Positions 27,534 to 46,970 of a stretch of DNA of 64,000 nt are shown in pieces (the first letter of the stretch is position 1; every line of letters begins with the position of its first letter). Location of the stretch: IMG/VR virus record IMGVR_UViG_3300024239_000013, positions 62,001 to 126,000 of that record; one strand, given 5' to 3'. Under the pieces are notes generated by a model, which was not told where the DNA came from, did no database searches, and saw nothing but the letters and a program-made list of their open reading frames with translations. The position numbers and the translations under genes are program-made.

Positions 27534-28631
27534 CTAATCTTCTGTTTTATTCCAAAATGGTTTTTGATATTTGGGTCTTATCATTTTCCAGATTTTTTCT
27601 GAATAGTCATTCCCATCATAGAACATAAATAAAATACTTGTTATATCTCTATCTTGTTCTTTTGCCCATTCTGCAAATTCCTTCCTTCCTTTATCTTTTT
27701 CAAAATCTGGTCTTTTTTCAAAGAAGCTCTTGTAAATATCGTTTACTCTTTCCTCTATTGATGAATAGTTATATTTCAATTCTTTTATTATTTTCTTCAC
27801 CCAAAGATCAAATTCATCAGGAACCCTATCCAAAAAATTACCAAGATCCTGTTTATTTTTTAAGAGCTCCCAGATATCCACATTCGAGAAGTTTGTCAAT
27901 AGTCTATGTAATCTAACATATTCCTCGCCTTTTATTTTCATTCTGAATCCGGAAGAAAATCTAATAACGAAACCCTCGGAATTTGAAGATATTATTTTTT
28001 TAAGCTCTTTGTAATTATTAAGACCGTCATATTTTTTAACTACTTTAAACCCTATAGTTCCTAGAATACCCTGGTTTTTTAAGTTCATTAAGCTTTTTTC
28101 GTCAGAGTGAATATCATATTCATATCCATCTAAATTATCAATAACTGAAAGTAAAATGATATCCTCAAAATCATAGCTAACAACTATTCGATTTTCTGGG
28201 TAGATAATCTCGAATAAATAAGTGCAATCTTTCAACAAATCCTTATAATGATATTTCTCCAATATAGATCTTCCCCTTATCGCTTGCTCTGAAGTGAATG
28301 ATCCTTTTGTAGCAAAATGCCATTCCCCTTCGTAATTGAAAAGTATACCCAAGGATCCGTCCATCTTCTCGAAAACATCAAAATTTTCGTTCGGAATATC
28401 GCTAGAATCCAATTCTTCTAAATTAAAGAATTTAGGAAATGTCCTTGCAACGACATTTCCTTCCCTATCAAGAACCGTCCCTCTCATATTAAGAGTGATT
28501 TCATCCCACTCTTTAGAGAATTGGCACTCTCTTGAATAGTTATAAATATCCAAAGGTAATGATGGATGAGAATTTTTTTCTAAAAGACCTCTTTCAATAT
28601 AGGAATTGAGAATATTTATATCGTATTTCAT
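27534..28631 (-). CDS. T4 Rnl1-like RNA ligase
   Basis: FPKFFN, EKMDGSLG, FEII, EGFV, KIKGEEY. Confidence 0.88.
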   Translation of the reverse strand: MKYDINILNSYIERGLLEKNSHPSLPLDIYNYSRECQFSKEWDEITLNMRGTVLDREGNVVARTFPKFFNLEELDSSDIPNENFDVFEKMDGSLGILFNYEGEWHFATKGSFTSEQAIRGRSILEKYHYKDLLKDCTYLFEIIYPENRIVVSYDFEDIILLSVIDNLDGYEYDIHSDEKSLMNLKNQGILGTIGFKVVKKYDGLNNYKELKKIISSNSEGFVIRFSSGFRMKIKGEEYVRLHRLLTNFSNVDIWELLKNKQDLGNFLDRVPDEFDLWVKKIIKELKYNYSSIEERVNDIYKSFFEKRPDFEKDKGRKEFAEWAKEQDRDITSILFMFYDGNDYSEKIWKMIRPKYQKPFWNKTED

Positions 28632-28930: not shown

Positions 28931-29236
28931 TTATCTGTAATATTTTTTCTTTAGATTAATTTCAAGCGTATCTGTAAATGTTTTATCGCAAACATTTACA
29001 TCATAATAACCAATATGCCATTCGTGTTTACCGTTCACGAAGTTATATCCATAGTGGTACCCAAATTTATTTTCAACGTGAGAATCGACACATTTTCCAA
29101 TAATCCTATATTCTCTACCGTTTTTAATGAAATTCGGTTTACGTGTAATTTCACATCCAACCAATAACGATAATGTCATTACATAGAAAAGTAATCTCGT
29201 ATTTAATACTTTATTATTGTTCAATAGTATTTTCAT
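28931..29236 (-). CDS. putative lipoprotein
   Basis: Hydrophobic stretch ending LVGC. Confidence 0.45.
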   Translation of the reverse strand: MKILLNNNKVLNTRLLFYVMTLSLLVGCEITRKPNFIKNGREYRIIGKCVDSHVENKFGYHYGYNFVNGKHEWHIGYYDVNVCDKTFTDTLEINLKKKYYR

Positions 29237-29238
29237 AT

Positions 29239-29676
29239 TTATTTGATTGTATTTTCGTTTATAAAAAAACCAAAATCAACTAAATCTTCAATATTTTTCA
29301 TGTTATCCCTAAATAAAAATTCAACACCTTCTTCATAGGAAATAAATCTTCCTATTGATATGTCATTATTGTGTACTAGATACCCATTTTTGTCTATTTT
29401 AAATCCTTTAAACAAAACTTTTTCTTTTGCTCTTAAATAATTATAAATTTCATCATTGTAGGCATCATCATAACCTTCAATATAATTTTCAGGTTTTTCT
29501 AAAACATTACCATCCTCGTCACAAGGAACAAACATTTCTAGTTTTAAAGATTGTTTTAGAAATTCCACATATCTTTTCACTGTATTAATATGTCTTATGG
29601 CTTCTTCCTGCGTTGGAATATTTTCTAATAATTCAAAATGATCTAAAACAAAATCAGAAATTGATATTAGTTTCAT
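29239..29676 (-). CDS. family D paralogue 1
   Basis: MKLIS...FLKQ.LKLEM..PCDED...KEKVLF shared with 30828-31208 and 37442-37882. Confidence 0.75.
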   Translation of the reverse strand: MKLISISDFVLDHFELLENIPTQEEAIRHINTVKRYVEFLKQSLKLEMFVPCDEDGNVLEKPENYIEGYDDAYNDEIYNYLRAKEKVLFKGFKIDKNGYLVHNNDISIGRFISYEEGVEFLFRDNMKNIEDLVDFGFFINENTIK

Positions 29677-29684
29677 AATTATCA

Positions 29685-29710
29685 CCACTTACTACAAGTG
29701 GGAAGTTTTA
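29685..29710 (-). repeat. gene-junction hairpin repeat AAAACTTCCCACTTGTAGTAAGTGG (copy 1 of 11)
   Basis: Other copies: 30528-30551, 31717-31740, 32110-32134, 32457-32484, 32876-32904, 37891-37914, 38528-38552, 38708-38736, 40150-40174, 41987-42009. Confidence 0.9.
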
Positions 29711-29713
29711 AGG

Positions 29714-29899
29714 TTAAAAAGGACAATATTCTTTTTTAGGTTTGTCCTGTAATTCTACATAATCTCTTTTTATTTTCTCTGAGATTGCTTTTCTTACAAA
29801 ATCTGAAACCTTTATATTTCTGGATTTCAATTTCTCTAAAGTTCTTTTTTGGGTAGCTGAAATTTTAAGCGTAAAAACTTCGGTATATAAAGGTCTCAT
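29714..29899 (-). CDS. small ribbon-helix-helix-like protein
   Basis: FTLKIS strand then helices (VSDFVRKAISEKI). Confidence 0.55.
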   Translation of the reverse strand: MRPLYTEVFTLKISATQKRTLEKLKSRNIKVSDFVRKAISEKIKRDYVELQDKPKKEYCPF

Positions 29900-29905
29900 A
29901 ATGAT

Positions 29906-29944
29906 TTTGTATTACTTTTTATTCGTCTATATAGATGTTATACG
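29906..29944. repeat. about 40-bp repeat TTTGTATTACTTTTATTCGTCTATATAGATGTTATA (also about 38760-38797, 40186-40222, degenerate 30564-30590)
   Basis: Direct comparison; always paired with a hairpin repeat. Confidence 0.85.
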
Positions 29945-30364
29945 CTATATTATTTTTCCCATCCTCTTTTCAAGTAATTGCGGATTTTCATAAATATTTC
30001 CTATTTTTTTATAAAGTCTATTTTCAAGTGGAAAAGTCCAGAACATACTTTCATCCAGTTCTTTTATATCCCCATCTTTATATTTCTCAAACTCATAATC
30101 TAACAAAGCTCCGAACATTCCCCATTCTTTAATCCAAACTACAACAGTAATATTTCCTTCTTTATCCTCAAGAATATCACTTTCCCATATAAATTTAAAT
30201 TCAGTGTCTTCAAATCCTGTCTTTTCCATTGCTATTATTTCAGCAAGATTTGCCCACTTATATTCTCCTGTTCCGTCTGGAATATAAAGAGCTTTTCCGT
30301 TTCCTACGATGGCATTGTATCTCATTTTTTTGCCATCCCATAATCTGTAATTAGGTCTTTTCAT
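29945..30364 (-). CDS. YopX family protein
   Basis: YRLWDGKKM, TGFED..IWESDIL, IGNIYENPQLL. Confidence 0.8.
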   Translation of the reverse strand: MKRPNYRLWDGKKMRYNAIVGNGKALYIPDGTGEYKWANLAEIIAMEKTGFEDTEFKFIWESDILEDKEGNITVVVWIKEWGMFGALLDYEFEKYKDGDIKELDESMFWTFPLENRLYKKIGNIYENPQLLEKRMGKII

Positions 30365-30365
30365 T

Positions 30366-30831
30366 TTATAATTTTTTAGTATTAATATTACACGCTTCAA
30401 CAGCATCTGTTAATCCTTGTGAATAACAACTATAACAAAGAGTTTTTAAATCAAATTCAGGCGTTTCTGGTTTAAAATCTTTAAACTTTGATTGAAATCT
30501 TTGTTCATCCAAATACATATTAATAAACACTTACTACAAGTGGGAAGTTTTAATATTAATTGTTTTTATTTCGTCTATTTTTGTGTTATAAGCAATTATT
30601 ACCAGACATTCGGTTAATTCTAATCTGTAGGTTTTCTCGCTCTTCATATAATTCCGACAAACGTTTATTGTAGTCAAAATCTTTGTTGGTTTCCATCGAA
30701 ACTTCAAATCTGTGAATACCATTTAAAACAATCGTTTCACCCTTTTTAATGCGAAAAATAACATTTATAGCACCATTTATTATTTCAACCTTGTTTTGCA
30801 TGTTGATTAATAATCTGTTTTTTTTTTTCAT
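30366..30831 (-). other. two small CDS (30366-30518, 50 aa, not in track; 30586-30831)
   Basis: Manual translation; the 30518 ATG follows a hairpin repeat. Confidence 0.5.
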
Positions 30832-31208
30832 AGTCCTATTTGTTTAATTGCTGATTCGGTTAAATAAATTGGTGTTATTGTATTAATAATATCTGATAAA
30901 GATTCTATTGTTGAGAATGTATTCACTAACCATTTAGCTTGAGCAATAGGTATATTTTCAAATAAAACTTTTTCTTTAGAATTATTGTATTGTATTTGTT
31001 TAAATTCTTTTTCACTTCCTGCATCTTTATCAGAAGCAAATGGATTATTTAAAATATTTCCATCTTCGTCACAAGGAAAAAACATTTCTAGTTTTAAAGG
31101 CTGTTTTAGAAAGTTAGCATATTTTACAATTGAATCTCTTTGTTTTATATCTGTAATATCTTGATTAAGAACAAAATCTGTCATTGATATTAATCTAAAT
31201 GTTTCCAC
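30828..31208 (-). CDS. family D paralogue 2, 5' end displaced by HNH insertion
   Basis: LISMTDFVL...FLKQPLKLEMFFPCDEDG. Confidence 0.75.
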   Translation of the reverse strand: METFRLISMTDFVLNQDITDIKQRDSIVKYANFLKQPLKLEMFFPCDEDGNILNNPFASDKDAGSEKEFKQIQYNNSKEKVLFENIPIAQAKWLVNTFSTIESLSDIINTITPIYLTESAIKQIGL

Positions 31209-31708
31209 GTTTTTCGGTTAATTATATTATATATATTACGATATGTTACTTTGTATTTTAGTGCAAGTTCAGTTGGTTTTAATGTTGAATTTCTAATTTC
31301 AATTATATCTTTTTCTGTTAATTTGCTTTGATGGTGTTTTTCACCTGTCATAGTATTTGAAATTGACTTTTTATGCTTATCTGTTATAGAAGTCCCTTTT
31401 CTAGCATTTATAAATTTTTCTGATACACCTTTATTAGATATACGTTTTTTAGACTCTAATCCTATTTTGTTTTTAGATTCTATTGTATGTTTATAGCCTT
31501 CTGGATGGTCATAATTATAATGACATTTTCTACAAAGCTTTATATAGTTTTCAACATTCTTTTCATGAAACTTGCCATTTATTAATGCATTATCCAATAT
31601 AGATTCTGTATCTCCACATCTTTCACAGGCTTTTATGTGTTTCATTCTTCTTCTAATCCAATCATGAATATTTCTATAATCTTTTGAGTTCGTTGATATT
31701 AGTTTCAT
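31190..31708 (-). mobile_element. HNH-type homing endonuclease-like gene with NUMOD3/HTH C-terminus
   Basis: HDWIRR..CERC..LCRKCHYNYD; HT.ESK.KI; SKLTEKDIIEIR..LALKYKVT..RKTWKH; 9-bp flanking duplication. Confidence 0.75.
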
Positions 31709-31710
31709 AA

Positions 31711-33355
31711 TTATATCCTCTTATAACAAGTGGGGTTTTTAACAAGTTCTATGTTTGATTGTTTGTAGTATCTAAGGGATTTTAATTTTTCTTGGATACG
31801 AGATTCTACATCAGAAAAATCAATTTCTTTAAATAGATCATGAATTATGTCAGTATCGTCCCCTGTTATCTCATTCCACAATTCCCAAGTTGAATCTGCT
31901 AATAAATCTCGAATTTGATTTTCGTCTATTCCATTAAAAATAATAGGAGTTTTTTCAGTTGCCATTGGAGATTTATCGAAATTAATAGCATCAATATCAT
32001 CAGAAATATTTTTTAGTCTTTGGTGACCTTCATCAGGATATACATAATATTTATATCCATTATTTATTGCTTCTTGTAATGTCATTTTTATATTTTTCAT
32101 TTTATGCTTCCACTTACTACAAGTGGGAAGTTTTTGATTCGTGTAATAATCTATCTATTTCAGCTACTATTAGTGCTCCTGCTTTTTGTAAATCTCTAAT
32201 TCGTAAATTAGTATTATCTGTATAATCTCTTTTTAACCATTCTAAATCAAATGGCCAGAAATGTAAAAACATATCATTTCCCCATTCATTATCAATAAAA
32301 CTAATCATATCATTAGTCATAGCATATGCACAGGCCGCATTTGCCAATTCTCCTTCTTTATGTTCTGCATCATGTTCATAAGTCCATCCTTCTATTTCAA
32401 TTTGTCTTTGCCTTTCTTCAGCAATTAATTGTATTTCTGTTTTCATTTTATTAAATCCACTTACAAATTCTAGTGGGAAGTTTTAGTTTTGTTTATCCAT
32501 CTAGCCAATCAGACCTATCATAACATAAATAAGAGTGGTCTTCTGGTTCTTCATATTTACAATTATTACAAAAAGCCTCAGAAAATTCTTCGTGAGTTGC
32601 TAATTCACCACAACCGCAGTAAAGTCTTTCTATTGAACCTTTTTTTATTTTTAACCTAATATTTCTATATTTAAAACAATCATCTATATTTTCAGGATAA
32701 CCATTTTTATCAATATCTCCTTCAACATAGTCTTTGTTATCGTACATTTCTTCAACGTTCATAAAATCTTGACCATAAGACCTAACATTTCCCCAAACTT
32801 CATCTCCAATTTCTATATGAACATAATCTCCTATTACTTCTTGTTCTGATATTGCTTTTACAAACATATTTTAATCCACTTCGCTATGCCTAGTTGGAAG
32901 TTTTAAATTTTTCTAACTCAACTAAGGAATCCATGTACAAATAGCAACTTTGTCCCAATTTTTATTTTCAAGTAAAGTCTTATCATCAGACCATTGACCT
33001 AAATGATTTCGTTCGCCACTCTCTTTATCCCACATCCAATCACAAAATTCATCCTCAAAACCAGTACCATTACCAGCATTAACAGTAACTCCATGAAATC
33101 TTGACAAGTCACCATCTACCAATAAAAATTGTAATGGGCTTTCAATGTCATTGTAAATAATTAAAGTTTTCATTTATTAATTCTTTTGTCTTTTTCTAAA
33201 ATTTCTTTTTTGTGTTCGAGGACTTTTCTAGCTTCTGTAGAAATTCCTTTATTTTTCTTTAAAGCATCAACAATTTTTCCCCATTCATATACATTTGAAT
33301 GACTTAATGATGCTGTTCTTACTTGCCCTTTAAACCAATAATTAATTGCTAACAT
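31711..33355 (-). other. five small CDS (31711-32100, 32117-32446, 32493-32867, 32922-33173, 33170-33355)
   Basis: The first three are each preceded by the hairpin repeat; 32117-32446 has the common phage IAEERQRQ...KAGALIVAEIDRL pattern. Confidence 0.65.
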
Positions 33356-33394
33356 AATTTTTCAATATTTAAAATTGTATAAAATTCTTTTGAT

Positions 33395-33797
33395 TTAGTG
33401 GCATTTCATTAACTTTCTATTGAATTCTTGAGTATGGTTTATTAATGGGTGGTTAAATTCAATTTCGTTAAACTTATTTTTATCAATATCAATTCGGATA
33501 CAACACTTCATCACATCAACATTACTGAATACACGTTCTTCTATTTCGTCATTTTTTTGGAATAAATTTAACGTCATTTAATTCATTGTACTCCTTTAAA
33601 GAAAAAGGTTTCACCTTATAATTTTGTCTTAATTTACCATAATCAAAAACCATTCTTATACCTCTATGGGCCAAATAATTATAATCTCTTGTCATATAAA
33701 CACAGGGATATAATATCCTCTGATCCATATAAATAAAACCAGTATCTAAAATTGATTTTAATCTTTTTAAGTTTAGTATATTATGATATAGTTCCAT
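33395..33797 (-). pseudogene. frameshifted gene, possible ADP-ribosyltransferase-like fold
   Basis: 33549-33797 and 33395-33577 join by removing one A from the A7 run at 33552-33558; LYH...TR...EIEER. Confidence 0.45.
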
Positions 33798-33848
33798 AAA
33801 TTAAATGTTAAAATACTACACACAGATCCAAAATTTTTACTAGAAATA

Positions 33849-34130
33849 CTAAACAATATTTGCCACACCATTGGTAATTATATAATGAGTTTTACACCCA
33901 AACCTATGAAGTATTGACGGACTTATGGTCGCTTTACCGTTATTAATGGTTAAGTTCCATTCACCTTCTTTAATAGGTATTGGTGTTTGCTTTCCACAAC
34001 CACAAGGACAAAGGTGATTTGCTATTTTATATTCTTTTGAATAATATAGTTTACCTGATTCCATTTCATTGAATCCTGGAATAAATTCTACTTCAATAAG
34101 TTCTAAAGGAACTTTCTGTAATGTTTTCAT
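33849..34130 (-). CDS. DUF6527-like metal-binding protein
   Basis: HLCPCGCG, TISPSI, CKTHYIITNG. Confidence 0.7.
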   Translation of the reverse strand: MKTLQKVPLELIEVEFIPGFNEMESGKLYYSKEYKIANHLCPCGCGKQTPIPIKEGEWNLTINNGKATISPSILHRFGCKTHYIITNGVANIV

Positions 34131-34153
34131 TTTAATATTTTTTTAAATAAAAA

Positions 34154-35363
34154 TTAACCCCATATAGAATCTTCCAATTTTTCAACATCTTCTAGACTTC
34201 TAATATCAACATATTTAATCCTAATCCCATTATGAAAAACTGACACATGAAAGGATTTATTGTCGGTAACCATTCTAAAAGAAATGTCATGACCATAGAG
34301 CCCATTTTTAGAATATTGTAAATCAAATAATGATGTTGCAACTTTTCTTAGTTCGTTATGATTTAGTTCGTTATGATTCATACTTTTCTTGTATATGTTA
34401 ATATCGATATTTTTTCTAAAAATAATTTGACTATCCAATAAGTTTTACCCGAGAGGCTATCTTGAATCCAGCAATTGTATGAACTTCATGTTCACTAGTT
34501 CCAAAGTAATTAGTCACAAGATAATTGCCGGGTTTTGGAGAAATCTTGACAACTGATCCGGATGGTTCTTTTACATCACTGACATTTCCAAACATGTATC
34601 TCCACATATCACATGAAATTGAACCGCAATAAATCCAACCCAATTTTGGAAGTTCTTCACTGGCCTCGAACTCCATTCCAGAATTATCTCCTTGACCTTC
34701 AGCCCAACGATAAGTCTCTTCTATGATTATGAATTCTTGTTTATCACTAGACAAATAGATATCAATTGACGTATTTCCCAGTTGTTGGTAGCCAATATTG
34801 TCATTGGCATGAAACTCAGCAATACGTCTTCTTCCAACTATAGTATTCAAAGAAAAGTAATTATAAGAAAAGTCTTTTTCAGCTTCGTCTAGTTTAGCAA
34901 TGTGATCTTTAAAGAAGTTAGCAAAGACGATTTCTCCATTTACTTTAAATTCAAATGACTGGGGTAAGTTATGTTCTAATTCGCAACGATCTTCCTGGTA
35001 TTCATAAAACCATTTACTTGCTGGAGATTCTTTGGTATTGAGTTCAGCAACAAAACAAATAATCTTAGACTCTAGTGGATCATACCTCCAACCGAGTGAT
35101 CGATTACAATTTGCACATGGTGAATCCAGTTCTATTTCCCTAATGTGTTTATCACCGTCCGGAATTGACTCAGTAATTAAAGACTCTGACCAAACAATCC
35201 CTTTTTTCGAAAGAGCTGAACTATTATCCCAAAATTCAATTCTTTTTCCAAGACGTTTTATCATTCCATCAGGGCCCCATCCATAAAAAGGATTGTGCCC
35301 ATTCTCGTCTATTTTAATCTCTCCGGAAACAAGTCCATCGTAGAGCTGTTTTATTGTTATCAT
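34154..35363 (-). other. two hypothetical CDS (34154-34438, 34431-35363)
   Basis: ORF track; 15-bp tandem duplication at 34349-34378 (NHNEL twice). Confidence 0.55.
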
Positions 35364-35429
35364 AAAGTAAATAATTTCATTTTTTTTAATCTAACTTCTT
35401 CTTTTGTCATTTTTCAGAGTCCTCTATAT

Positions 35430-35715
35430 TTAAAAAATATCAACTACACGTCTGCAAACTTTCTTTGTCCACCAGTTAATTCCACCTTTATTGTTTCTTA
35501 TAATCAATCTCTTTTCGTTGTTTCCCTTTACAGGTGAGTGTAAAATCTACCTTTCGCCTTGCAATAAACAATATCTCCTCCGTTGCAATATTTCCGTTTT
35601 ACAGGAGAAAGTTTATATCCTTGACCTGATTTAATTAAAGGTACCGTTGAATTTCCTTTTCGATTGTAACGAATGTTTCCTCGTTCTCTAATTTTTCTAA
35701 TTTATAATTTTTCAT
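35430..35715 (-). pseudogene. degraded copy of the S24/S26-like gene at 40230-40520
   Basis: Starts MKNYKLEKL, ends RVVDIF*; internal frameshifts. Confidence 0.8.
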
Positions 35716-35796
35716 TTGTATAAAATTTTTGATATTAAATATAGCAGCAAATATAAGAAATAAATATAACTGTTGCTTTCAATCTTATAGTGAATT

Positions 35797-36287
35797 TTAA
35801 ACCCCTACAGTCATACATTTTGTTGTTGGTACAAATTCATATTCTTTACCTGATGGGTATTTGACTTTTATCAAAGATGATAGCCCATTATCCAAAATTT
35901 CCACAATGACATCATCCCATTCCATCCAACCTATGCACCATAACCTTACCTTATCTCCGGTTTTGCAATCTTTAAGTTCTTTTTCCATAATAAAACGTAC
36001 TATAATATTTCACAAAAAACAAGAGTGCCGAAACTCTGTCTGTATGTTTTGGTTATTTTAGACCTTTTTTAGTGTATTTCTTGATGTTAGGAGTAATTTT
36101 TACCACACCTATTACACTTAGTGTTTTTTGGCATACGTCCATCACTTGGTACGTATCCAAATTCATCTATACAATCTTGAATCTTACAAGTGAATTGATG
36201 CCAACCAATTAAGCAAAGTAATCTTGAAACAAAACTACGCCTAGCAGAAGTGATATTCAATTTTGGATTTTTTTCTTCTTTTCCCAT
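35797..36287 (-). other. two small CDS (35797-35988, 36087-36287)
   Basis: ORF track. Confidence 0.5.
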
Positions 36288-36429
36288 TTTTGTTATCTAA
36301 TTTAAGTTATTCATATTTTGATAATTTGTGATTCTGAGCCCGCAAGTAAATATTTTCATCTTTAGACACACTGCATATAAACCCAGGTTCTGTTTCAAAA
36401 AATTCAAAGGCTTATAGTTTTATATCAAG

Positions 36430-37410
36430 TTAAATCTGAATAATTTCAAATCCTTTATATAAATCATTTTTCCAACGCCAGTCTAGATAATCTTTTTTTA
36501 GTAGTTTAACCTTTTTACCAAGAGAAAGAGCAAGATGTGCAACAACGGTATCAATAGTCCAAATCTCATCACATTTTAGAATCAATTCTGATGTATCTAA
36601 TAAATTATTTATTTCAACATAATCCGCAAAATCTAATTTTTGATCATGTTGAAGAGATACTATTTTTTTATCGTTGATTTTATCTCTGATTAAATTTGGA
36701 TCTATACTTCTTTCCTTGGTATTTTTAGATTTTGAATTTGCTGACCAGCAAAGACCAATATCCCATTTTCTACTTTCCTGTTGAACCTCTATCAGATAAC
36801 TTTGATCCGATAAATCAAAGAAGAAATCACCAGATAATAAAAATCTGTCGTGATTCATTACAAATTCGTATGAAATTGATCTTTCTGTAAAGAATGTAAC
36901 ATTTTGAAATTTAAAATATTTTTTAAAGAATTCTAAGGTTTCTTCATATACCTGATAAGATACGCTTTTATATTTTTTTGATAAAAATTCTATCTGCCGG
37001 GAGAACAGAATCTCGTCACCAAATCCTTGTTCGTTCAAGACAAGAATTGCATCTGCTTCCTCACCGAATTTCAATCTTTTTATAGGTAGATCTGGATATG
37101 ATTTTCTGATACCCTCACATCTAAATTTCCAATATCCCTTAGCTTCTTCTGCTTTTTTGAGATGCATTAAACATAAAAATATTTCATACTGTGATTCACC
37201 ACCATTTAATTCAGATTTTCTATAACATCTTAAAGCAGATTTCCAATCAAATATTGCAGATTTACAAAGACCCATATTGTAGTAAATTATTGATAGTGTT
37301 TTACTATCTAATTTTTTACCGAGTATTTTTTTTAGTATATCATAGGAACCTTTATAATCACCATTATTATAAAGTAAAATAGATTTCCCAACTATAGCCG
37401 AAATGTCCAT
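36430..37410 (-). CDS. TPR plus glycosyltransferase family 9-like protein
   Basis: N-terminal TPR (YYNMGLC), EQGFGDEILFSR, TIDTVVAHLA, DWRW. Confidence 0.78.
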   Translation of the reverse strand: MDISAIVGKSILLYNNGDYKGSYDILKKILGKKLDSKTLSIIYYNMGLCKSAIFDWKSALRCYRKSELNGGESQYEIFLCLMHLKKAEEAKGYWKFRCEGIRKSYPDLPIKRLKFGEEADAILVLNEQGFGDEILFSRQIEFLSKKYKSVSYQVYEETLEFFKKYFKFQNVTFFTERSISYEFVMNHDRFLLSGDFFFDLSDQSYLIEVQQESRKWDIGLCWSANSKSKNTKERSIDPNLIRDKINDKKIVSLQHDQKLDFADYVEINNLLDTSELILKCDEIWTIDTVVAHLALSLGKKVKLLKKDYLDWRWKNDLYKGFEIIQI

Positions 37411-37441
37411 ATTTTATTTTTTTAATCTATTAATTTCTAGC

Positions 37442-37882
37442 TTAATTTTTCTGTTTTCGTATTCCTATTTGTTTTACTGCGTTTTCGGTTAATATAGGTT
37501 CATAGTGTATTAAGCATTCTATTGTAGTTTGATATAAATCCTTTACTTTTAATATAGGGACTGAACACATGTAAATAGTTCCTTTAAAAATTTCAAATCC
37601 TTCAAACAAAACTTTTTCTTTTGCTTTTTTATATCTGTAAATTTCATCATTGTACTCTGTCATAATATTAGGAAGTCTCTGTTCATAGTCTTTAGGTTCG
37701 TATAAAATTTCATCATCTTCATCACAAGGCGCAACCATTTCTAATTTTAAAGGCTGTTTTAGAAAATTATCATAATTAGTTCTTATTTCTTCATACCAAG
37801 CAAGATATACATTTCTTGTAGGAAATTCTTTTTCTTTTGATTTACATAACTCACCAAAAGAAGTATTTGATATTAGTTTCAT
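37442..37882 (-). CDS. family D paralogue 3
   Basis: MKLIS...FLKQPLKLEMVAPCDED...AKEKVLFEGF. Confidence 0.75.
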   Translation of the reverse strand: MKLISNTSFGELCKSKEKEFPTRNVYLAWYEEIRTNYDNFLKQPLKLEMVAPCDEDDEILYEPKDYEQRLPNIMTEYNDEIYRYKKAKEKVLFEGFEIFKGTIYMCSVPILKVKDLYQTTIECLIHYEPILTENAVKQIGIRKQKN

Positions 37883-38088
37883 AATTATTACCACTTACTA
37901 CAAGTGGGAAGTTTATTTTTTTGTTATATATTTCAACACTTATAATTCTTTCTGAGGTACGATTAATTTTCCAAATCGCTTGTTCTATTGCTCTTTCAAA
38001 TGATAATGCTGAAATATTTATCCTTCGTTTTTTTTTCCAGAAATATCATTTATAATGGTAATTCTATAAGTTTCCATAATTATGATTT

Positions 38089-40139
38089 TTAAATATTAAT
38101 AGAATCTAATTTTTTTTCTAATTCTGCAAATAATTCCTTGTCTTTTCCTTCTTTAATTATTCCCAAAATACAACTAGTTTGATAACGCAATGAACCAACG
38201 ATGTCTTTTATTCTTTGTTCTTCTAATTCTTCATCTATATGAAAATTCAAATCAACTTCATTATCTTGAACAAAATCAATTGTAAACTGTTCATAATTTC
38301 CACTATGGATTTTATCCTCATAATACCTGAAAATTTCTAAAGCTTGTTTTAACATGTTTTTAATTTTTATTTTTTTATTATCTTTATCTTGTCTATTGTA
38401 GGAACTATAATGTTCAATTCATGGCATTTATTACGAATTATCATCCAAGCAGCTACTTTACTAATTGCTTTAGCTTTAAATCCATGAATTTCATCAATAA
38501 ATTCTTTATTATTTTTCATAATTTTTACCACTTTCTACAAGTGGGAAGTTTTATTTAAAGCCAAATTTCTTTTTACCTTTAATTTTACGCTCCGTTTTTC
38601 TACGATAGTTACGTTTTTCTCTGCTAGAAACTAAGTCAGACTTACCTAAAAACTCGTAATCTCTAGTTATTTTATAACTATTTGTTTCTTTTTCCATTTT
38701 AGTAATTCCACTTCTCTATGCCTAGTGGGAAGCTTTAAGGTTAAATGCTCCATAGCGATTTTGTATTACTTTTATTTCGTCTATATGGATGTTATACACA
38801 ATACTACATTAGGGTTTCAATTATAGTTCTGTGTAAAATAAAATTATGAAGGTATAAATCCATATCTAAAACCTTCTCTACCGTATAACGCATCGGTACA
38901 AATAATTCCATCTGAGTTGTTAATTTCGTCTATATCTTCTTTTGTAAGTTCAGTTCTAATTAACATACTTACCATTCTATTGTTCTCATAAGAAAGTCTT
39001 TTGTTTCCATTCACATCATCAATAATTTCTAATGGTTCTATACCATTTTCACCAACAATACATTTTCTTGATAAAGACCAATTAACAACGCTTGGATGTT
39101 TTGTTGTAATTATTTTGTTTTGATGAACACCTGCTTTAACATATTTTTCTACTAATTCCTTCATATTTTTATTTTTTTCACCGCACAATTAGTTTTTAGT
39201 TAAATCTGTTCTTATCCAACAACCTATAAATTTAGCCTGCTCAATTAATTGTCTTTCAAATTCTTTAGCGTCTTCTTTTTTGATGAAAACCTTTGCTTGT
39301 CTTCTTGTGTCGTCTGACCACCCTGTTTTTACATACCAAGTTACCGTCCAGCTTTCAAGTTCTGTAACTGTTTGCATTTTCTCTTTTGGAATAAATAATT
39401 TAAATAATTTCATTTTTTTAAATTTGTTTAAGCCAACCCACAAAAAATAAAAATATCCTATGACACGGGTTTGGCGTAATGTCACCAGATAATTTAGTGC
39501 TAAAATTTAAGCTCATGGAAAGGTGCACTAACACCAAGCAGAAAAATGTTAGATGAAATTCTTTTCAATAAAATCATCTAATCCCATTTTACGAAGTTTG
39601 CTATTTAATATCTCCCCTTTTTTATTACATTCTGTACCTCTTTTTGATTTTTCAAGATAGAATGTGTAAAACTCTAAACCTATTGGGTTTTCATATTTTT
39701 TTGATAATTCTGCTTTATAAATTTCCATTTTATTTTTTTTTAAGTTAAACATTTGTTTTTCCAAAGTCACTACATCACAAATGCTTTAGCGAGACCATAG
39801 TTATTAAGTTAAATTTTAGTTATAGTCCTTTTACGAAAGTGATAACTCCTCTTCGCAAATAGTTTGAATCATTGCAATCCTAAATCCGGAACGAAGTCCA
39901 AACTTAGAATCATTACAATCTACATCTTTAATTTTTGTATAAACTTTTTTCCAAAACTCTATGTCTTGCTTCATTTCATCGATAATTAAATCAACCAAAT
40001 TGCAAAACATATCCCAAGATTGGTTATCAAACGAATCAACGTTTTCTAAAACAAATTTTTGAAACTCATTTTTTGCTTCTTCGGAATTATGTCTTTGATT
40101 TCCGAGTTGTATCATTTTTACTTTATTATCCCAGTGCAT
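38089..40139 (-). other. small hypothetical CDS (38089-38355, 38367-38519, 38551-38697, 38844-39188, 39189-39485, 39549-39770, 39831-40139)
   Basis: ORF track plus two manually translated 48-50 aa ORFs that follow hairpin repeats. Confidence 0.55.
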
Positions 40140-40229
40140 AATTTTATTTCACTTGCTTTATAGCGGGAAGTTTTAAGGTTAAAGGTTTGTATTACTTTTA
40201 TTTCGTCTATATAGATGTTATATGCAAGG

Positions 40230-40520
40230 CTAAATAACCTCTACCACACGACCATAAACTTGCTTTGTCCATCCATTGATACCACCTTTATTATTTCCGA
40301 TGAGCAATCCCTTTTCGTTGTTTTTGCCCTTAACCAAGTGAGTGTAAAAATTACCTTTCACTTTACAATAAACAATATCACCTTCATTACATTCTTCCCA
40401 CTTTACAGGAGCAAGTTTATGTTCCTGTCCTGATTTAATTAGTGGTATCATTGAGTTTCCTTTTTCACTTGTTACAAACGTTTCTCCATTCTGTAACTTT
40501 TCTAATTTGTAATTTTTCAT
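40230..40520 (-). CDS. peptidase S24/S26-like small protein
   Basis: GNSMIPLIKSG, GDIV, THLV. Confidence 0.55.
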   Translation of the reverse strand: MKNYKLEKLQNGETFVTSEKGNSMIPLIKSGQEHKLAPVKWEECNEGDIVYCKVKGNFYTHLVKGKNNEKGLLIGNNKGGINGWTKQVYGRVVEVI

Positions 40521-40521
40521 T

Positions 40522-40812
40522 CTATTTAACTTTAAATTTTACTAGTTCTCCAAAATCCATTAATTTACCTCTAAAATCACAAATTTTAGATTTTCCTGAA
40601 ACCTTATAATAAGGGCAATCCTTATTACATTCAGATTTATCACCAACAGTTTCTAATTCTGAACACCATATATAATCTTTTTCTTTTGAAGGAATTGCTT
40701 CAAAAAGTTCTATTTCATTCAATCCTTCTTCTTTTGCTCTTTCTAAATAAGTTTGTAAAGGATAACAAATGTTAGCATCTTCATTTTCAAAATATAATTT
40801 TTCTGTTTTCAT
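40522..40812 (-). CDS. Cys-rich hypothetical protein
   Basis: ORF track. Confidence 0.55.
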   Translation of the reverse strand: MKTEKLYFENEDANICYPLQTYLERAKEEGLNEIELFEAIPSKEKDYIWCSELETVGDKSECNKDCPYYKVSGKSKICDFRGKLMDFGELVKFKVK

Positions 40813-41362
40813 AACTTAATTTTCTTTCAATTTAATCCAACCATATTCAATTAGGTTATCTACAGATAAACCCACGTAAGGTAATGCATAACCTTTAGAA
40901 CGGAGGTAATCAAAAACTTGCATCCAATTTTTAATTCCATTAGTACTAGAAGTAGTTCCGCTGTCATTAATTGAAGTTCTAAAAATTGATAGTATTAATT
41001 CTTTAATTGCACCAGATAAATGACCTAGTCCAAATATTTTAGAAACCTCAATAGCATCTTCATCACTTATCTGTGAAAGTGGGTTTAGTATTAATTGGCA
41101 TTCATTTATATTTGCATTACATGATAATTCATTTTTTTCAAAATTTTCATCTTCTAATGATACTATCCAAACCTGCTTTGTAAAATTTCCACATGATAAA
41201 TAGAATGAAACTATATTTCCTATTCTATCTTGGTAAAATACTTGTTGATTTAAATACTGAGCAAAAAACTTTGCTTTATTTTCTAATGTGTTTTCTGTTT
41301 TCATAACTTAATTTTCTTTCAATTTAATCCAACCATATTCAATTAGGTTATCTACAGATAAA
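40799..41362. repeat. perfect 72-bp direct repeat (40799-40870 and 41291-41362)
   Basis: Covers the 3' end of each family E gene and the next MKTE start. Confidence 0.9.
40816..41304 (-). CDS. family E paralogue 1
   Basis: MKT.NTLENKAKFFAQY...PLSQIS.ED...RSKGYALP...LIEYGWIKLKEN. Confidence 0.75.
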   Translation of the reverse strand: MKTENTLENKAKFFAQYLNQQVFYQDRIGNIVSFYLSCGNFTKQVWIVSLEDENFEKNELSCNANINECQLILNPLSQISDEDAIEVSKIFGLGHLSGAIKELILSIFRTSINDSGTTSSTNGIKNWMQVFDYLRSKGYALPYVGLSVDNLIEYGWIKLKEN

Positions 41363-41769
41363 TCCATCCAAGGTAATGCATAACCTTTGGAACGAAAGTA
41401 ATCACATTCCTTTGACCCAATTTTTCTATCACCATTCCAATGATGGAGACTTCTGAAGGTCTTAAAATTACGACCTAATTCAATCGAGGCAATTTCACTA
41501 AAAGTAAAATAATGATTAACTTCCAATATCTCCCCTAGTTCATCATAAGTTTTATTATATGTAAACATAATGCCCTGGATCGTGTCTTCATTACTAATCT
41601 GTGAAAGTGGTTTTAGCTCTAAGTAACTCCTATCTATACCATACATATTCGATGTATCTACAGGATAAATTTCTTTATTCCCTGAATTTGATATATCCGA
41701 TAAAACTTTTTGTCCCCAATACTGAGCAAAAAACTTTGCTTTATTTTCTAATGTGTTTTGTGTTTTCAT
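41308..41769 (-). CDS. family E paralogue 2
   Basis: Same constant blocks, unrelated interiors. Confidence 0.75.
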   Translation of the reverse strand: MKTQNTLENKAKFFAQYWGQKVLSDISNSGNKEIYPVDTSNMYGIDRSYLELKPLSQISNEDTIQGIMFTYNKTYDELGEILEVNHYFTFSEIASIELGRNFKTFRSLHHWNGDRKIGSKECDYFRSKGYALPWMDLSVDNLIEYGWIKLKEN

Positions 41770-41774
41770 AATTT

Positions 41775-43327
41775 TTAATCTTTTTCTAAGTAAATTATCC
41801 CTTCACCTTCCAATAAGATATTGTCTGCAATATCTGAAAAAATGTCTGGTGCCTCTATTAATGCATCGTCACTTTGCTGTATACATTCTCCTATTCCATG
41901 TTTTTCTAAAAACTCTGTTATTTTTTCTATTGCTAATTCTTTTTTTTCGGTTGTCCAATTTACTTGATATGCCATAATCTTTAATTCACTTAATATAAGT
42001 GAGAATTTTTTATTAAATAAGATTAAATTAAATATTATTTCTGGGATAAAGTTGTTATTTTAATGAGGTATAAAAACCTATCTGAATGTAAATATAGATG
42101 ATTAATCGTGAATCTAAAATAAAACTCCATTACCTTTCGATTTCTTTCTCCTTTACTATAACAGGGAAACATATAGTGTCACTTTCTTTAAAACTCATAT
42201 ATTCATGGAGGTTAACTTCTCTCAATTCACTATTATCGAGCAAAAAGTAATACCTTTCTACTATAATTCCTCTTCCTATAGATCCCGTTACATACTTTTT
42301 GGATTTGATTTCATAACATTGATCTTCATAAGTGTAAACATAACTTTCTTTTTCACAAGAAAAAAGAAATGATAAAATAATTAAAAAATTTACTAATCTC
42401 ATATAATTTAAAAATTTTACTATTTATTTTTAAATTCTTTTTTAATGAATCTTTCACCGTCTCTCTTAATGGAATCTAGTATGGAATCATTTGATGAATA
42501 ATAGGAATAGAAAGAATCTTTAATGTATTCGTATTTTTTATCTGGTGGAAGATTCTCAAAATAGCTGTTCATTTTACCGATAATAAATTCAACTAATCCA
42601 TCTAAAGAGCAAATGAAAGAAATAAAATTATTATTTGTCTCAATTTCTTCCTGAGTAATATTCTCCTTATTTATTCTAGATTTTAGAATTCTCATCTGAT
42701 ATTGAACATTAGTGGATAATATTGCTATTTTATAATAATCATTTTTTGTAAAATTATTATTGTTTTTTTCACAATATTCTAGGAAAAAATATTGAAATAT
42801 CGAAATCTCCCGGTCAGAATAAGGAAGCCACTTAACGATGTTTAAGTATTTATTTATTCTATCCTTTGATGAAATTTTCTCAGTAACATCTTGCTGAATA
42901 TTATCTAATCCCATTTGATCTTTTTTTTAATCCAACAAAATTAATAAACATCTACGATAAATAAAAAAAATTACGGAAATCCCATAATTTTTTTTAATAT
43001 CAGTAAATGCCTGTCAATTTAACTATCTCTTTTAAGACACAGGAGAAATAAGATGAAATTGCTTTTAATTTGGTTATATTATCTATTAAATCTTTATTTA
43101 TATAAATTAACCAAATAGTTTATGATCAAAAAAATTGAGATTGCGTGGATAAATGCTGATGTGTAAAATATAATTTTAGTGTAGTTAAATTTTTTAAAAA
43201 ATTCACCATCATCCAAAATTAAATATTTAAAAACATATAGAATTCCTATTACTGGAATATGAATGTTAAATAATTTTCTCATATTGTATAATGTTTTAAT
43301 GCTTTTAATAAACATTGTTCCAAACAC
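41775..43327 (-). other. small CDS (41775-41975; 42130-42402 lipoprotein LFSC; 42420-42914; 43094-43327 membrane)
   Basis: ORF track. Confidence 0.55.
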
Positions 43328-46572: not shown

Positions 46573-46577
46573 GACCT

Positions 46578-46970
46578 TTATTTTTCTTTAACAATTTCAA
46601 TTAATTTCTTTAAACATTCAAGTTCTGCTTCTTCTTGTGTTCTACACAAGTACCATTCTCCTATTCCGATTTCCTTATAATTTCCAAAATGTTCATATTG
46701 GAATATGTCAAAACAGAATTTGGGATCTGTTGTTCTGTCTATTTGAATTTCACAAAATAGGTTATATTTCTCTCTAAACCATCTAAATGCTTGTGAGAAT
46801 GTCGGGGCATATATATTTTGAATTGCTTCTTCTAAATAATTGTAATCATTAGGAGAATCCTGATAGTAGATTAAACTATTATTTTGACTATAAAATCCAA
46901 AACAAGATTCATCAAATCCTAATTCTTTTAAAGCTAATGCAATTTTATAAGGTACGAATTCCCTTTCCAT
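46578..46970 (-). CDS. family A paralogue
   Basis: ME.EF.PY..AL.LKELGFDE.C / APTFSQAFRWFREKY / EEAELECLKKLIEIVK. Confidence 0.85.
   Translation of the reverse strand: MEREFVPYKIALALKELGFDESCFGFYSQNNSLIYYQDSPNDYNYLEEAIQNIYAPTFSQAFRWFREKYNLFCEIQIDRTTDPKFCFDIFQYEHFGNYKEIGIGEWYLCRTQEEAELECLKKLIEIVKEK

Follow-up and report, generated by a model that had tools for sequence, protein, structure and literature searches.

Results

The window analysed here, a 64-kb stretch of a 319-kb IMG/VR virus contig, contains a tract of about 35 genes between 29.6 and 42.0 kb in which a short hairpin element recurs 11 times on the minus (coding) strand (Table 1). Each copy consists of a leader, U-AAAACUUCC, followed by a 6-7 bp hairpin (mostly CCACUUG-UAG-UAAGUGG) and an A/U spacer of 8-10 nt that ends at the ATG of a small gene. 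The element marks roughly one gene junction in three within the tract, not all of them. Three copies of a 37-nt box and a ribbon-helix-helix (RHH)-like gene are found in the same region.

Table 1 Features of the hairpin tract. Distances are from the stem end to the ATG of the downstream ORF. CM, covariance model.
Position (strand)	Feature	Downstream ORF (distance to ATG)	Context and support
29674..29710 (-)	Element 1, canonical: U-AAAACUUCC, CCACUUG-UAG-UAAGUGG	145 aa (8 nt)	CM 48.8 bits, E 1.4e-10; MFE -7.9 kcal/mol, z -2.6; preceded by the RHH gene; right-hand end of the 842-bp strain deletion
30516..30552 (-)	Element 2, canonical except that the basal pair is lost (GUGU)	50 aa (8 nt)	CM 47.8 bits; MFE -3.4 kcal/mol; loop UAG is the stop of ORF 30534-30722 (stop at +15); left-hand end of the 842-bp strain deletion
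31706..31742 (-)	Element 3, decayed copy (AAAAACCCC, one internal mismatch)	172 aa (8 nt)	Not found by the CM; MFE -2.0 kcal/mol, no better than shuffles; lies inside the 3' end of ORF 31711-32100, which reads through it
32098..32135 (-)	Element 4, canonical	129 aa (9 nt)	CM 47.8 bits; MFE -8.4 kcal/mol, z -3.2; loop UAG is the stop of ORF 32117-32446 (...KTSHL, then stop)
32444..32485 (-)	Element 5, long-loop variant (CCACU, 10-nt loop, AGUGG)	109 aa (10 nt)	CM 28.7 bits, E 2.4e-5; homologues of the downstream gene in contigs L048 and L172 carry the canonical and the CGAUU-type hairpin, respectively
32865..32905 (-)	Element 6, long-loop variant with a weakened stem (CCAACU...AAGUGG)	124 aa (8 nt)	CM 16.7 bits, E 0.032; MFE -6.1 kcal/mol with an alternative fold
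37880..37916 (-)	Element 7, canonical (UAAACUUCC)	146 aa, paralogue of the gene after element 1 (8 nt)	CM 46.6 bits; MFE -6.7 kcal/mol
38517..38553 (-)	Element 8, canonical with a GUAGA loop	50 aa (8 nt)	CM 51.7 bits; MFE -7.4 kcal/mol, z -3.0; upstream ORF stops with the UAA that overlaps the first bases of the element (stop at -1)
38695..38737 (-)	Element 9, long-loop variant (AAAGCUUCC; CCACU, 11-nt loop, AGUGG)	48 aa (10 nt)	CM 18.1 bits, E 0.014; preceded by an 'empty' RHH cassette
40137..40175 (-)	Element 10, decayed copy (flank intact, stem reduced to 3-4 pairs)	102 aa (9 nt)	CM partial hit only, E 0.29; MFE -2.5 kcal/mol; preceded by an 'empty' RHH cassette
41973..42011 (-)	Element 11, compensated variant (AAAAAUUC; UCACUUA-UAU-UAAGUGA)	66 aa (10 nt)	CM 37.2 bits, E 1.5e-7; MFE -5.6 kcal/mol; two pairs changed on both sides; first copy of the tract in the direction of transcription
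29714..29899 (-)	61-aa RHH-like gene (weak DUF6290 match)		Pfam E 0.004, below the family cutoff; with its upstream box and element 1 forms a ~270-bp module, 95% identical in contig L116 and 90% in L122, which are otherwise unrelated
29906..29942 (-)	37-nt conserved box upstream of the RHH gene, possibly its promoter or operator; palindromic core GTAATAC		Three copies with <=2 mismatches against 0 in shuffles; conserved upstream of RHH homologues
38760..38796 (-)	Second copy of the 37-nt box		RHH ORF deleted; box lies directly upstream of element 9
40186..40222 (-)	Third copy of the 37-nt box		RHH ORF deleted; box lies directly upstream of element 10
29686..30527 (.)	842-bp segment (RHH, YopX-like and 50-aa ORFs) absent in a related strain		Joint 29685->30528 falls inside the 26 nt shared by elements 1 and 2

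The observation made in the preliminary description of this DNA, namely 11 co-oriented hairpins lying directly upstream of start codons and confined to this tract, was confirmed. All 11 sites were found on the minus strand at the ATG positions it gave (29676, 30518, 31708, 32100, 32446, 32867, 37882, 38519, 38697, 40139 and 41975). The distance from the stem end to the ATG is 8-10 nt at all of them, rather than the 8-11 nt originally proposed. The strict pattern CCACTT-N4-10-AAGTGG gave 4 matches in the window against 0 in 100 shuffles. A covariance model was built from 38 standard-length copies, 32 from other contigs and 6 from this window, and was run over the whole window with filters off. 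Nine hits had E <= 0.03, all on the minus strand between 29683 and 42014, and no other position in the 64 kb reached significance; the six seed copies match the model by construction, but three further window sites that were not in the seed still scored. The two remaining sites, 31708 and 40139, are decayed. The exact 23-mer occurs nowhere else on the 319-kb contig.

The claim that the element sometimes supplies the stop codon of the upstream gene (KTSHL followed by the stop) also held, for ORFs 32117-32446 and 30534-30722, as did the compensatory U-A pair, at 41984-42014. By contrast, the claim that G.U pairing maintains the stem at about 40150 is weakly supported, as the sequence there forms only a 3-4 bp alternative fold that is not better than shuffles.

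The element was found in about 23 other IMG/VR phage contigs and in 8 genomes. The exact 23-mer is present in 17 IMG/VR stretches and 8 GTDB genomes, five of which are isolates of Flavobacteriaceae genera (Myroides, Paenimyroides and Flavobacterium) and three of which are MAGs labelled Flavobacterium or Bacteroidetes. The neighbouring genes are phage genes such as those for TerL, portal, capsid and DnaB. The element is absent from Rfam, from cultured-phage records and from the literature searched.

Comparison of the copies showed that the stem is conserved as a structure, with 95.7% of cells in the alignment paired. Four of the seven pairs change on both sides (CG<->UA, AU<->GC/UA, CG<->AU and GU<->GC/AU/UG). 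None of 500 shuffles reached the observed covariation, and partners slid by 1-3 columns pair in only 26-45% of cells. The number of independent compensatory events is, however, small and the CGAUU/AAUCG type is one lineage, so that these statistics overstate independence. In an unbiased scan in which only the leader and UUGUAG were fixed, 32 of 97 hits had a perfectly complementary 3' arm (27 of the CAC and 5 of the CGA type), where about 0.1 would be expected by chance. Wobble pairs favour the coding strand: G.U closes the stem in 25 of 45 distinct copies and one contig (L115) has a U.G pair inside the stem, all of which would be A.C mismatches on the other strand.

The element could alternatively be read as an intrinsic terminator for antisense transcription, since on the plus strand it appears as a hairpin followed by GAAGUUUUA, in which the invariant AAAAC of the leader would be the U-run. 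A simple terminator scan flagged 3 of the 11 copies on the plus strand, but 2.8 were expected in shuffles, the U-run is only 4 nt long and is separated from the stem by an invariant GAAG, and the G.U pairs are lost on that strand. This reading, which also does not explain the fixed distance to sense-strand start codons, is very unlikely.

The stem-to-ATG distance is 8, 9 or 10 nt in 45 of 46 scorable copies, while the loop varies from 3 to 11 nt and the spacers and downstream genes are unrelated. The locked spacing could partly be inherited with the module rather than selected. The 110 other genes of the window have upstream regions typical of Bacteroidia, with no Shine-Dalgarno (SD) sequence (G <= 15%), a high A content at -14..-11, -6 and -3 and a mean upstream MFE of -0.57 kcal/mol. 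The genes preceded by the element average -5.5 kcal/mol. This matches the initiation rules of F. johnsoniae, where structure within -20..+20 lowers initiation and replacement of -14..-11 cut reporter output by up to 90% (PMC6847099). The anti-SD is sequestered in these ribosomes (PMC7797042).

A phage-type or hairpin-type promoter, or another transcription signal, starting near-leaderless mRNAs for each small gene was also considered. A conserved sequence of ~26 nt lies directly upstream of each gene, the stem (5-7 bp) and 3-nt loop resemble the early promoters used by the N4 virion RNA polymerase, and four window copies follow untranslated gaps of 58-176 nt. However, nothing is conserved upstream of the U at -1, and the variable loop changes the leader-to-ATG distance by up to 8 nt, which is incompatible with two-box promoter geometry. 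The wobble pairs favour the non-template strand, and many copies overlap or lie within 0-11 nt of the upstream stop codon inside apparent operons. In addition, the carriers are unrelated phages that share no polymerase or sigma factor in the sequence available, and most F. johnsoniae mRNAs are described as leadered (PMC6847099). A promoter is very unlikely.

An RHH-like gene directly precedes element 1 and together with the element forms a conserved module in four other contigs, represented by five loci. This raises the possibility of a palindromic DNA operator bound by a dimeric repressor such as the RHH protein, in which the arms would co-vary because both half-sites bind the same protein. 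The spacing between the half-sites varies, however, from 3 to 11 nt, and different stem types (CACUU, CGAUU and CUAUU) coexist within one phage locus. The RHH family is present in only 5 of 24 element-bearing loci, counting the window, more distant RHH homologues lack the element, and the RHH gene has its own conserved palindromic box upstream. Of the alternatives, this is the least likely.

Genes are gained, lost and exchanged at the copies. The strain variant that lacks the 842 bp between elements 1 and 2 was seen in a 28.5-kb DNA contig of one sequencing run (X3) and in contigs of two others (X6 and X9). The homology of the RHH module with L116 and L122 stops at the element, after which different genes follow, and related phages with the same TerL...portal backbone carry different cassettes after the element. 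One indel in the tract (31227->32662) is not at a copy.

Discussion

The preliminary description proposed either a cassette recombination site or an RNA element, such as a processing site or translational operator, and this interpretation is partly supported. The hairpin is under selection as a structure on the coding strand, and its lock to the start codon within +/-1 nt favours RNA and translation, while the gene turnover supports the cassette idea as an outcome. Dedicated site-specific recombination is not supported. In such a model the hairpin would form in single-stranded DNA of the coding strand and be cut and joined by a structure-specific recombinase, like integron attC sites or IS200/IS605 and REP hairpins. 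Consistent with this, co-oriented small ORFs are separated by a structured repeat whose loop varies, the strain deletion is precise, different genes follow the element in related phages, and G.T wobbles are tolerated in DNA hairpins too. Against it, no integrase, transposase or HUH family was seen among the 25 commonest families listed for 102 window proteins and 148 neighbours of the element in other loci, the hairpin is 17-25 nt long against 57-141 nt for attC and has no GTTRRRY core, and the lock to the ATG is not needed for a recombination site. Moreover, 26 nt of identity is enough for ordinary homologous recombination, as proposed for PeSLs (PMC4122927). We consider a dedicated recombination site very unlikely.

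An RNA processing and stabilising site is the strongest of the alternatives, though still unlikely. A host endoribonuclease of the RNase E/G or Y type would cut in the single-stranded UAAAAC/UUCC leader of a polycistronic transcript, leaving the downstream mRNA with a hairpin 3-4 nt from its 5' end that protects it from decay, as in the intercistronic processing hairpins of T7 or 5' stem-loop stabilisers. The structure is on the sense strand with an invariant, A/U-rich single-stranded leader directly 5' of the stem (its likeness to an RNase E site is a putative one), and the element fills the whole spacer between tightly packed co-oriented ORFs. A conserved host enzyme would explain identical sequences in unrelated phages, and three copies lie 10-45 nt downstream of the conserved box, which could be a promoter and would put the hairpin near a 5' end. 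However, a processing or stability signal does not need a fixed stem-to-ATG distance, and the 7-bp stem is too short for RNase III. The ends of contigs assembled from RNA-labelled runs reflect repeats rather than RNA ends.

The element resembles the PeSL/PmSL cassettes of T4-type phages (Arbiol et al. 2010, PMC2839356; Comeau et al. 2014, PMC4122927) in gene shuffling but not in anatomy. Both are short, conserved, co-oriented regulatory cassettes in the intergenic junctions of a variable tract of small ORFan genes, both end at the start codon of the next gene, and in both the breakpoints of deletions, insertions and exchanges lie in the repeat, through what is thought to be homologous recombination between copies. 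A PeSL, however, is a terminator stem-loop followed by a sigma-70-type -35/-10 promoter, an SD sequence and the ATG, whereas here only 8-10 nt separate the hairpin from the ATG and there is no promoter, U-tract or SD. The hosts are Bacteroidota rather than Proteobacteria, and the same sequence is shared by unrelated phages while PeSL sequences are specific to a phage pair.

Integron attC sites are likewise structured repeats between co-oriented small ORFs that apparently lack their own promoters, with structure conserved more than the loop, a position just upstream of the next start codon and gain and loss of cassettes at the site. They are, however, imperfect palindromes with R/L boxes and extrahelical bases that need IntI, whereas this element has a perfect hairpin and an invariant 10-nt leader. 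T7 RNase III processing sites and bacterial REP elements are also repeated hairpins inside polycistronic units at gene junctions, and REPs have a conserved short leader 5' of the stem; RNase III sites are irregular duplexes of about 20 bp, while REPs are chromosomal, tied to RAYT transposases and not locked to start codons. In structured, SD-independent or 'split' initiation regions (the E. coli rpsA leader and the T4 gene 38 and gene 25 hairpins) and in phage translational operators (the MS2 coat-protein hairpin, the T4 gp43 and RegA sites and the Mu Com site), as in the reading proposed here, a small hairpin at a fixed distance upstream of the AUG is part of the ribosome-loading region, with a single-stranded A/U-rich flank next to the stem. 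Those are single sites tied to one gene and one regulator, whereas this is a multi-copy module placed in front of unrelated genes in many phages of an SD-blind host, with no regulator identified.

The explanation we favour, although it is about as likely as not, is that the element is a portable gene-junction module of about 36 nt, found in phages and prophages of Flavobacteriia, that acts on the sense-strand transcript as part of the translation-initiation region of the gene that follows. The analysis itself establishes the existence of the element and its restriction to one tract, its conservation across phages, the stem covariation and coding-strand bias, the locked spacing, the atypical structure compared with other genes and the gene turnover at the copies. 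That the hairpin forms in RNA, that translation is the process affected, which partner recognises it and whether it serves as an operator, processing or docking site are matters of inference from sequence alone. With the observed spacing the hairpin would occupy about -10 to -26 relative to the AUG, a stretch that in SD-less Bacteroidia mRNAs is normally unstructured and A-rich and helps the 30S subunit load. It would therefore set or gate ribosome loading on the downstream small gene, and may do so by folding alone or together with a conserved host factor. The very strong sequence conservation of the leader and the UAG loop (46 bits in all) is not explained by folding alone and calls for a recognising factor, but none was identified, as no protein family is shared by the loci that carry the element. 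Translational coupling cannot be the general mechanism, since four window copies have no upstream ORF ending within 58 nt.

In this view, the UAA at the start of the element and the UAG/UAA in the loop stop upstream ORFs in two of the three reading frames, so that any gene could be joined upstream of it. Because copies are identical over about 26 nt, homologous recombination between them would delete, insert and exchange the genes that lie between, and would spread the module among phages.

Identification of the element in the window and in other genomes

The window is AT-rich DNA (27-32% G+C in the tract), in which nearly all ORFs lie on the minus strand and 91% of the sequence is coding under the standard bacterial code. 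At each of the 11 positions listed in the preliminary description, the minus strand carries the same arrangement, namely a U, the leader AAAACUUCC, a hairpin (canonically CCACUUG-UAG-UAAGUGG), a short A/U-rich spacer and an ATG that opens an ORF of 48-172 codons. A covariance model (CM) was built from 38 standard-length copies, 32 from other contigs and six from this window, as MAFFT misaligned the long-loop copies, which were instead aligned to the finished model. The six window copies match the model by construction, but three window sites that were not in the seed also scored. When run without filters, the model found nine copies in the window, one further site gave a partial hit, one gave nothing and no other position was significant. 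Folding gives -5.1 to -8.4 kcal/mol for eight copies and -2 to -3.4 kcal/mol for the decayed ones. The observation made in the preliminary description is thus confirmed, with the caveats that two of the eleven copies are relics and that the element marks only about a third of the roughly 35 junctions in the tract.

The exact 23-mer (W at one loop position) is found nowhere else on the window's own 319-kb IMG/VR contig, but occurs in at least 17 IMG/VR stretches and in 8 species-representative genomes. Five of these are named isolates (Paenimyroides ummariense DS-12, P. baculatum SNL9, Myroides sp. C6-3 and 1354, and Flavobacterium sp. JP2137) and the other three are two Flavobacterium MAGs and one Bacteroidetes MAG. 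The flanking genes, seen over at most 14 kb at the other loci, are phage genes encoding the large terminase (TerL), portal, capsid, prohead protease, DnaB and exonuclease. Copies occur singly or as two or three within a few hundred bases, each before a small ORF. A looser pattern scan of IMG/VR returned mostly chance single hits, and the single metagenome scan gave four hits that the CM scores as weak or chance. Searches of the INPHARED collection with the tract, with the Dda-like helicase and with the element itself revealed no close relative and no cultured phage carrying the element. No hit in the window reached the gathering score of any Rfam family (release 15), the only hit at E <= 10 within 29-43 kb being one unrelated chance hit, and a literature search for the sequence found nothing. 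Distant relatives of the 326-aa tract protein (loci L232-L238) do not carry the element.

Coordinates of the features in the window and in related loci
Feature	Position	Strand	Details
CM hits, nine copies	29683-42014	minus	E <= 0.03
CM, partial hit	40139	minus	
CM, no hit	31708	minus	
Strain deletion	29685 joined to 30528		842 bp; RHH-like, YopX-like and 50-aa ORFs
Indel not at a copy	31227 joined to 32662		1,434 bp including three hairpin copies; 1 nt of overlap
37-nt box, before the RHH-like gene	29906-29942	minus	
37-nt box, before a remnant of the gene	38760-38796	minus	
37-nt box, before a remnant of the gene	40186-40222	minus	
37-nt box, partial copy	near 30564-30589	minus	
'Empty' RHH module	38695-38796		box plus element, ORF deleted
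'Empty' RHH module	40137-40222		box plus element, ORF deleted
Region matched by abundant RHH-like contigs	29594-29987		RNA-labelled run X6
Direct repeats after distant RHH homologues	about 3175-3260 in L244		two repeats of about 20 nt
Paralogue	29239-29676		phrog_12560 and phrog_31163 (three paralogues together)
Paralogue	30828-31184		
Paralogue	37442-37882		
'Gap' upstream of element 7	37883-38088	minus	206 nt
15-mer without the element	12480-12494; 59463-59477	minus	
15-mer, other sites	30564; 38770; 40196		
Interrupted RNA ligase gene	16858-19441	minus	
ORF with N-terminal intein motif	18632-19441	minus	PHA02142 OB-fold
Intervening ORF	17589-18557	minus	zinc finger, DUF7487, DUF559 endonuclease-like
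ORF with C-terminal intein motif	16858-17595	minus	RNA ligase domain
RNA-repair and translation-related genes	1-28700		for example 5945-6688, 9756-10580, 22162-22914, 27534-28631, and further ORFs not mapped individually
Tandem paralogous genes	45800-58900	minus	shared word at 45862, 48322, 50256, 51550, 51959 and 55153
Terminator-like hairpin	2113-2150		between convergent genes

The hairpin is conserved as a structure on the coding strand

Across 45 distinct copies, 95.7% of stem cells pair. Four of the seven pairs change on both sides, CG<->UA at the base, AU<->GC/UA, CG<->AU and the closing G.U<->G-C/A-U/U.G. No shuffle out of 500 reached the observed covariation and sliding the partners by 1-3 columns dropped pairing to 26-45%. 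The compensatory events are few, however, as the CGAUU type is a single lineage, so these statistics overstate independence. A scan that fixed only the leader and UUGUAG returned at least 97 distinct hits; of the 97, 32 have a perfectly complementary 3' arm (27 CACUU/AAGUG and 5 CGAUU/AAUCG), while the rest are chance hits inside genes. The closing G.U pair (25 of 45 copies) and an internal U.G pair (locus L115) would be A.C mismatches on the other strand.

Different stem types coexist in one phage (loci L043, L118, L124, L128 and L132) and loops range from 3 to 11 nt, which rules out a dimer-binding DNA palindrome and any two-box promoter geometry; an operator for the RHH protein is regarded as very unlikely. 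Promoters of the N4 type have a 5-7 bp stem with a 3-nt loop on the template strand and are recognised by a virion RNA polymerase. The stem and loop sizes of the canonical copies fit this description, but loops reach 11 nt, the wobble pairs favour the non-template strand and no giant polymerase was seen in the flanks. A hairpin promoter is likewise considered very unlikely.

The element is not an intrinsic terminator, which is a G+C-rich hairpin immediately followed by a U-run, as none is predicted on the sense strand, where no U-tract follows the stem. On the antisense strand 3 of 11 copies were flagged, against 2.8 expected by chance, and a GAAG spacer lies between the stem and the U-run, so that an antisense terminator is also very unlikely. 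By contrast, a perfect 6-bp G+C-rich hairpin flanked by an A-run and a T-run (AAAAAATCCCAAT-CAAG-ATTGGGATTTTTTTT) between convergent genes of the window looks like a bidirectional intrinsic terminator, showing that canonical terminators exist in this genome and look different from the element. With 6-7 bp in the stem, the element is not an RNase III site of the T7 type, which is an extended duplex of about two helical turns. An endonucleolytic processing site with a 5' stabilising hairpin remains possible but unlikely.

The element is locked to the start codon

The distance from the last stem base to the A of the ATG is 8 nt in 14 copies, 9 nt in 27 and 10 nt in 4, out of 46 scorable copies. 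The remaining copy, and three unscorable ones, also have an ATG at 8-9 nt. This holds although the spacers differ in sequence and the downstream proteins are unrelated. Upstream of the U at -1 there is no conservation at all, so no shared promoter precedes the element.

The upstream ORF usually ends either at the UAA formed by the U at -1 and the first two A's of the leader, or at the loop UAG, which is followed in frame by UAA; read-through of the loop UAG is therefore rejected. In four window copies, however, no ORF ends within 58 nt, which excludes translational coupling as the general mechanism. Mimicry of a Shine-Dalgarno (SD) sequence by the 3' arm is also rejected, because the CGAUU-type arm (AAUCGG) has no resemblance to an SD. 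The 'gap' upstream of element 7 contains a 19-codon ORF and, in another frame, a 64-codon open frame, separated by a run of nine A's, and may be a frameshifted or slippage-prone small gene.

The 110 other genes of the window show no SD signal (G <= 15% at every position from -20 to -1), are A-rich at -14..-11 (0.61-0.73), at -6/-5 and at -3, and have essentially unstructured upstream regions, with a mean MFE of -0.57 kcal/mol against -5.5 kcal/mol for the motif genes. This is the pattern described for Flavobacterium johnsoniae, where adenines at -3, -6, -12 and -13 promote initiation, structure between -20 and +20 lowers it and replacing -14..-11 with UCCC cut a reporter by 90% (PMC6847099). 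In those ribosomes the anti-SD is sequestered by bS21, bS18 and bS6 (PMC7797042). The 11 motif genes do not fit this description and form a separate class of initiation region, as they keep the A/U-rich -1..-9 stretch but place a G/C-containing helix over -10..-26.

Gene turnover at the copies

When contigs from other samples were compared with positions 29200-35100, a 28.5-kb DNA contig (run X3) and contigs from two further runs were found to lack the RHH-like, YopX-like and 50-aa ORFs, and the 26 nt shared across the joint are exactly the element. One other indel, in contigs of runs X6 and X9, is not mediated by the element; it fuses the 3' part of ORF 31190-31708 to ORF 32493-32867. The module made of the 37-nt box, the RHH-like gene and the element is 95% identical to the one in locus L116 and 90% identical to that in L122. 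The homology stops at the element, and different genes follow it in the window, in L116/L122 (a homologue of window 40522-40812), in L032 and in L242. Four phages share the backbone TerL ... c17-c4-c16 (working labels of this analysis) but carry different cassettes after the element. Integron arrays are associated with an IntI-type tyrosine recombinase and attI. No integrase or transposase family appears among the 25 commonest Pfam families listed for the 102 ORFs of the window, which covers 64 of the contig's 319 kb, or for 148 neighbouring ORFs in other loci.

The 37-nt box (TATAACATCTATATAGACGAAATAAAAGTAATACAAA) precedes the RHH-like gene and, in the two 'empty' cassettes, only a remnant of it. 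Its GTAATAC core is palindromic and is conserved upstream of RHH homologues that are only 42-62% identical, and the box is probably the operator or promoter of the RHH gene. More distant RHH homologues (loci L244-L249) are followed not by the hairpin but by two direct repeats (TTTAAGGTTATAGCTTTAAA), a different repeated signal. In run X6, short contigs resembling the RHH-like gene (5-16 mismatches) reach word depths of 2,000-17,000, while the neighbouring phage sequence reaches about 60-1,200; run X9 shows about a 10-fold excess and run X2 about 3-fold. The RHH module is therefore far more abundant, or more highly expressed, than this phage in wastewater, and is presumably carried by many other elements.

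Three paralogues of unknown function in the tract share 35-43% identity. Two of them carry the element and share the first 16 nt of coding sequence (ATGAAACTAATATCAA), as does ORF 31190-31708, which suggests that the element was duplicated or converted together with the 5' end of the gene. A 15-nt box (ATAGACGAAATAAAA), often preceded by ATAACA, recurs just upstream of gene starts and seemed to recur upstream of several copies of the element, with 33 matches at <=3 mismatches against 17 expected, a number that no shuffle reached. It could be a phage promoter-like box, but in part it encodes the C-terminal peptide ...IDEIK at the ends of ORFs, and at two sites it occurs without the element.

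Other features of the window

An RNA ligase gene appears to be interrupted by an intein, with the N- and C-terminal splicing motifs on two ORFs and a separate ORF between them, the three pieces being in different frames or separated by stops. The window also carries a dense set of RNA-repair and translation-related genes, a Thg1-like tRNA-His guanylyltransferase, a CCA-adding/poly(A) polymerase head domain, T4 Rnl1-type and other RNA ligases, a cyclic-phosphate processing receiver domain (cREC_REC), a metallophosphatase, SmpB, ClpP, YqeY and an IMPDH/GMP-reductase domain. A phage-encoded SmpB is unusual. Next to the hairpin tract, at least six tandemly arranged paralogous genes share 12-18-nt identical words (for example TGCTAAATGGCAACAAGA), representing an expanded multigene family.

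Proposed function and comparison with known systems

We propose, with moderate confidence, that the element is a sense-strand RNA hairpin which is part of the translation-initiation region and sets or gates ribosome loading on the downstream gene. In this view, its built-in stop codons and near-identical copies also make it a portable junction at which homologous recombination shuffles accessory genes. The structure, the strand bias, the spacing, the atypical initiation region and the turnover were demonstrated by the sequence analysis, whereas action in RNA, an effect on translation and the identity of any partner are inferences. The invariant leader and UAG loop argue for a recognising factor. 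No partner protein shared by the motif loci was found in the flanks examined, TerL being merely a frequent neighbour, while RHH occurs in 5 of 24 loci and ASCH in 3. This factor would most simply be a conserved host component such as the ribosome or an RNA-binding protein.

In evolutionary role the element works like the PeSL (promoter-early stem-loop) cassettes of T4-type phages (PMC2839356, PMC4122927), as 11 copies are clustered in 12.4 kb of small ORFs and an 842-bp deletion lies between two copies and cassettes are exchanged after the element in related phages. It does not, however, fit their anatomical definition of a terminator stem-loop, then a sigma-70-like -35/N17/-10 promoter, then an SD and start codon. 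The hairpin has an MFE of only -2 to -8.4 kcal/mol, the 8-10 nt between stem and ATG contain no such promoter, and the ATG is present without an SD. The element is not an attC, which is an imperfect palindrome of 57-141 nt with R''-L''/L'-R' boxes and a GTTRRRY core, as the hairpin is 17-25 nt long, the stem is perfect and no GTTRRRY follows it. An attC-like single-stranded DNA recombination site is very unlikely. The nearest mechanistic analogues are structured SD-independent or split initiation regions and phage translational operators, which are single-gene devices. The element is regarded as a repeated regulatory junction cassette whose anatomy differs from that of the PeSLs.

A further possibility, considered unlikely on present evidence, is that the hairpin and its leader are a ribosome-docking device of phage mRNAs for SD-blind Bacteroidia ribosomes. 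A 7-bp helix held 8-10 nt from the AUG would sit where the SD/anti-SD duplex sits in other bacteria and would be recognised, together with the invariant UAAAACUUCC, by the 30S platform or by a conserved host or phage factor. Horizontally acquired accessory genes would then carry their own portable, switchable initiation signal, and this would be a new class of bacterial translation-initiation element.

How genes are translated and regulated in Bacteroidia, whose ribosomes ignore SD sequences, is still being worked out and almost nothing is known for their phages. The element occurs in prophages of cultured Myroides, Paenimyroides and Flavobacterium strains, which makes experiments feasible, and a portable initiation or insulator module could also be useful for genetic tools in Bacteroidota. 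As a compact module supported by covariation, placed with single-nucleotide precision before the start codons of unrelated accessory genes in many Flavobacteriia phages, from ~30-kb prophage-like contigs to a 319-kb jumbo phage, it gives a directly testable handle on SD-independent initiation or its control. It also extends the idea of regulatory cassettes as shuffling junctions, known from T4-type coliphages and vibriophages, to another bacterial phylum and to a different anatomy, with a gene-loss event between two copies caught in natural populations.
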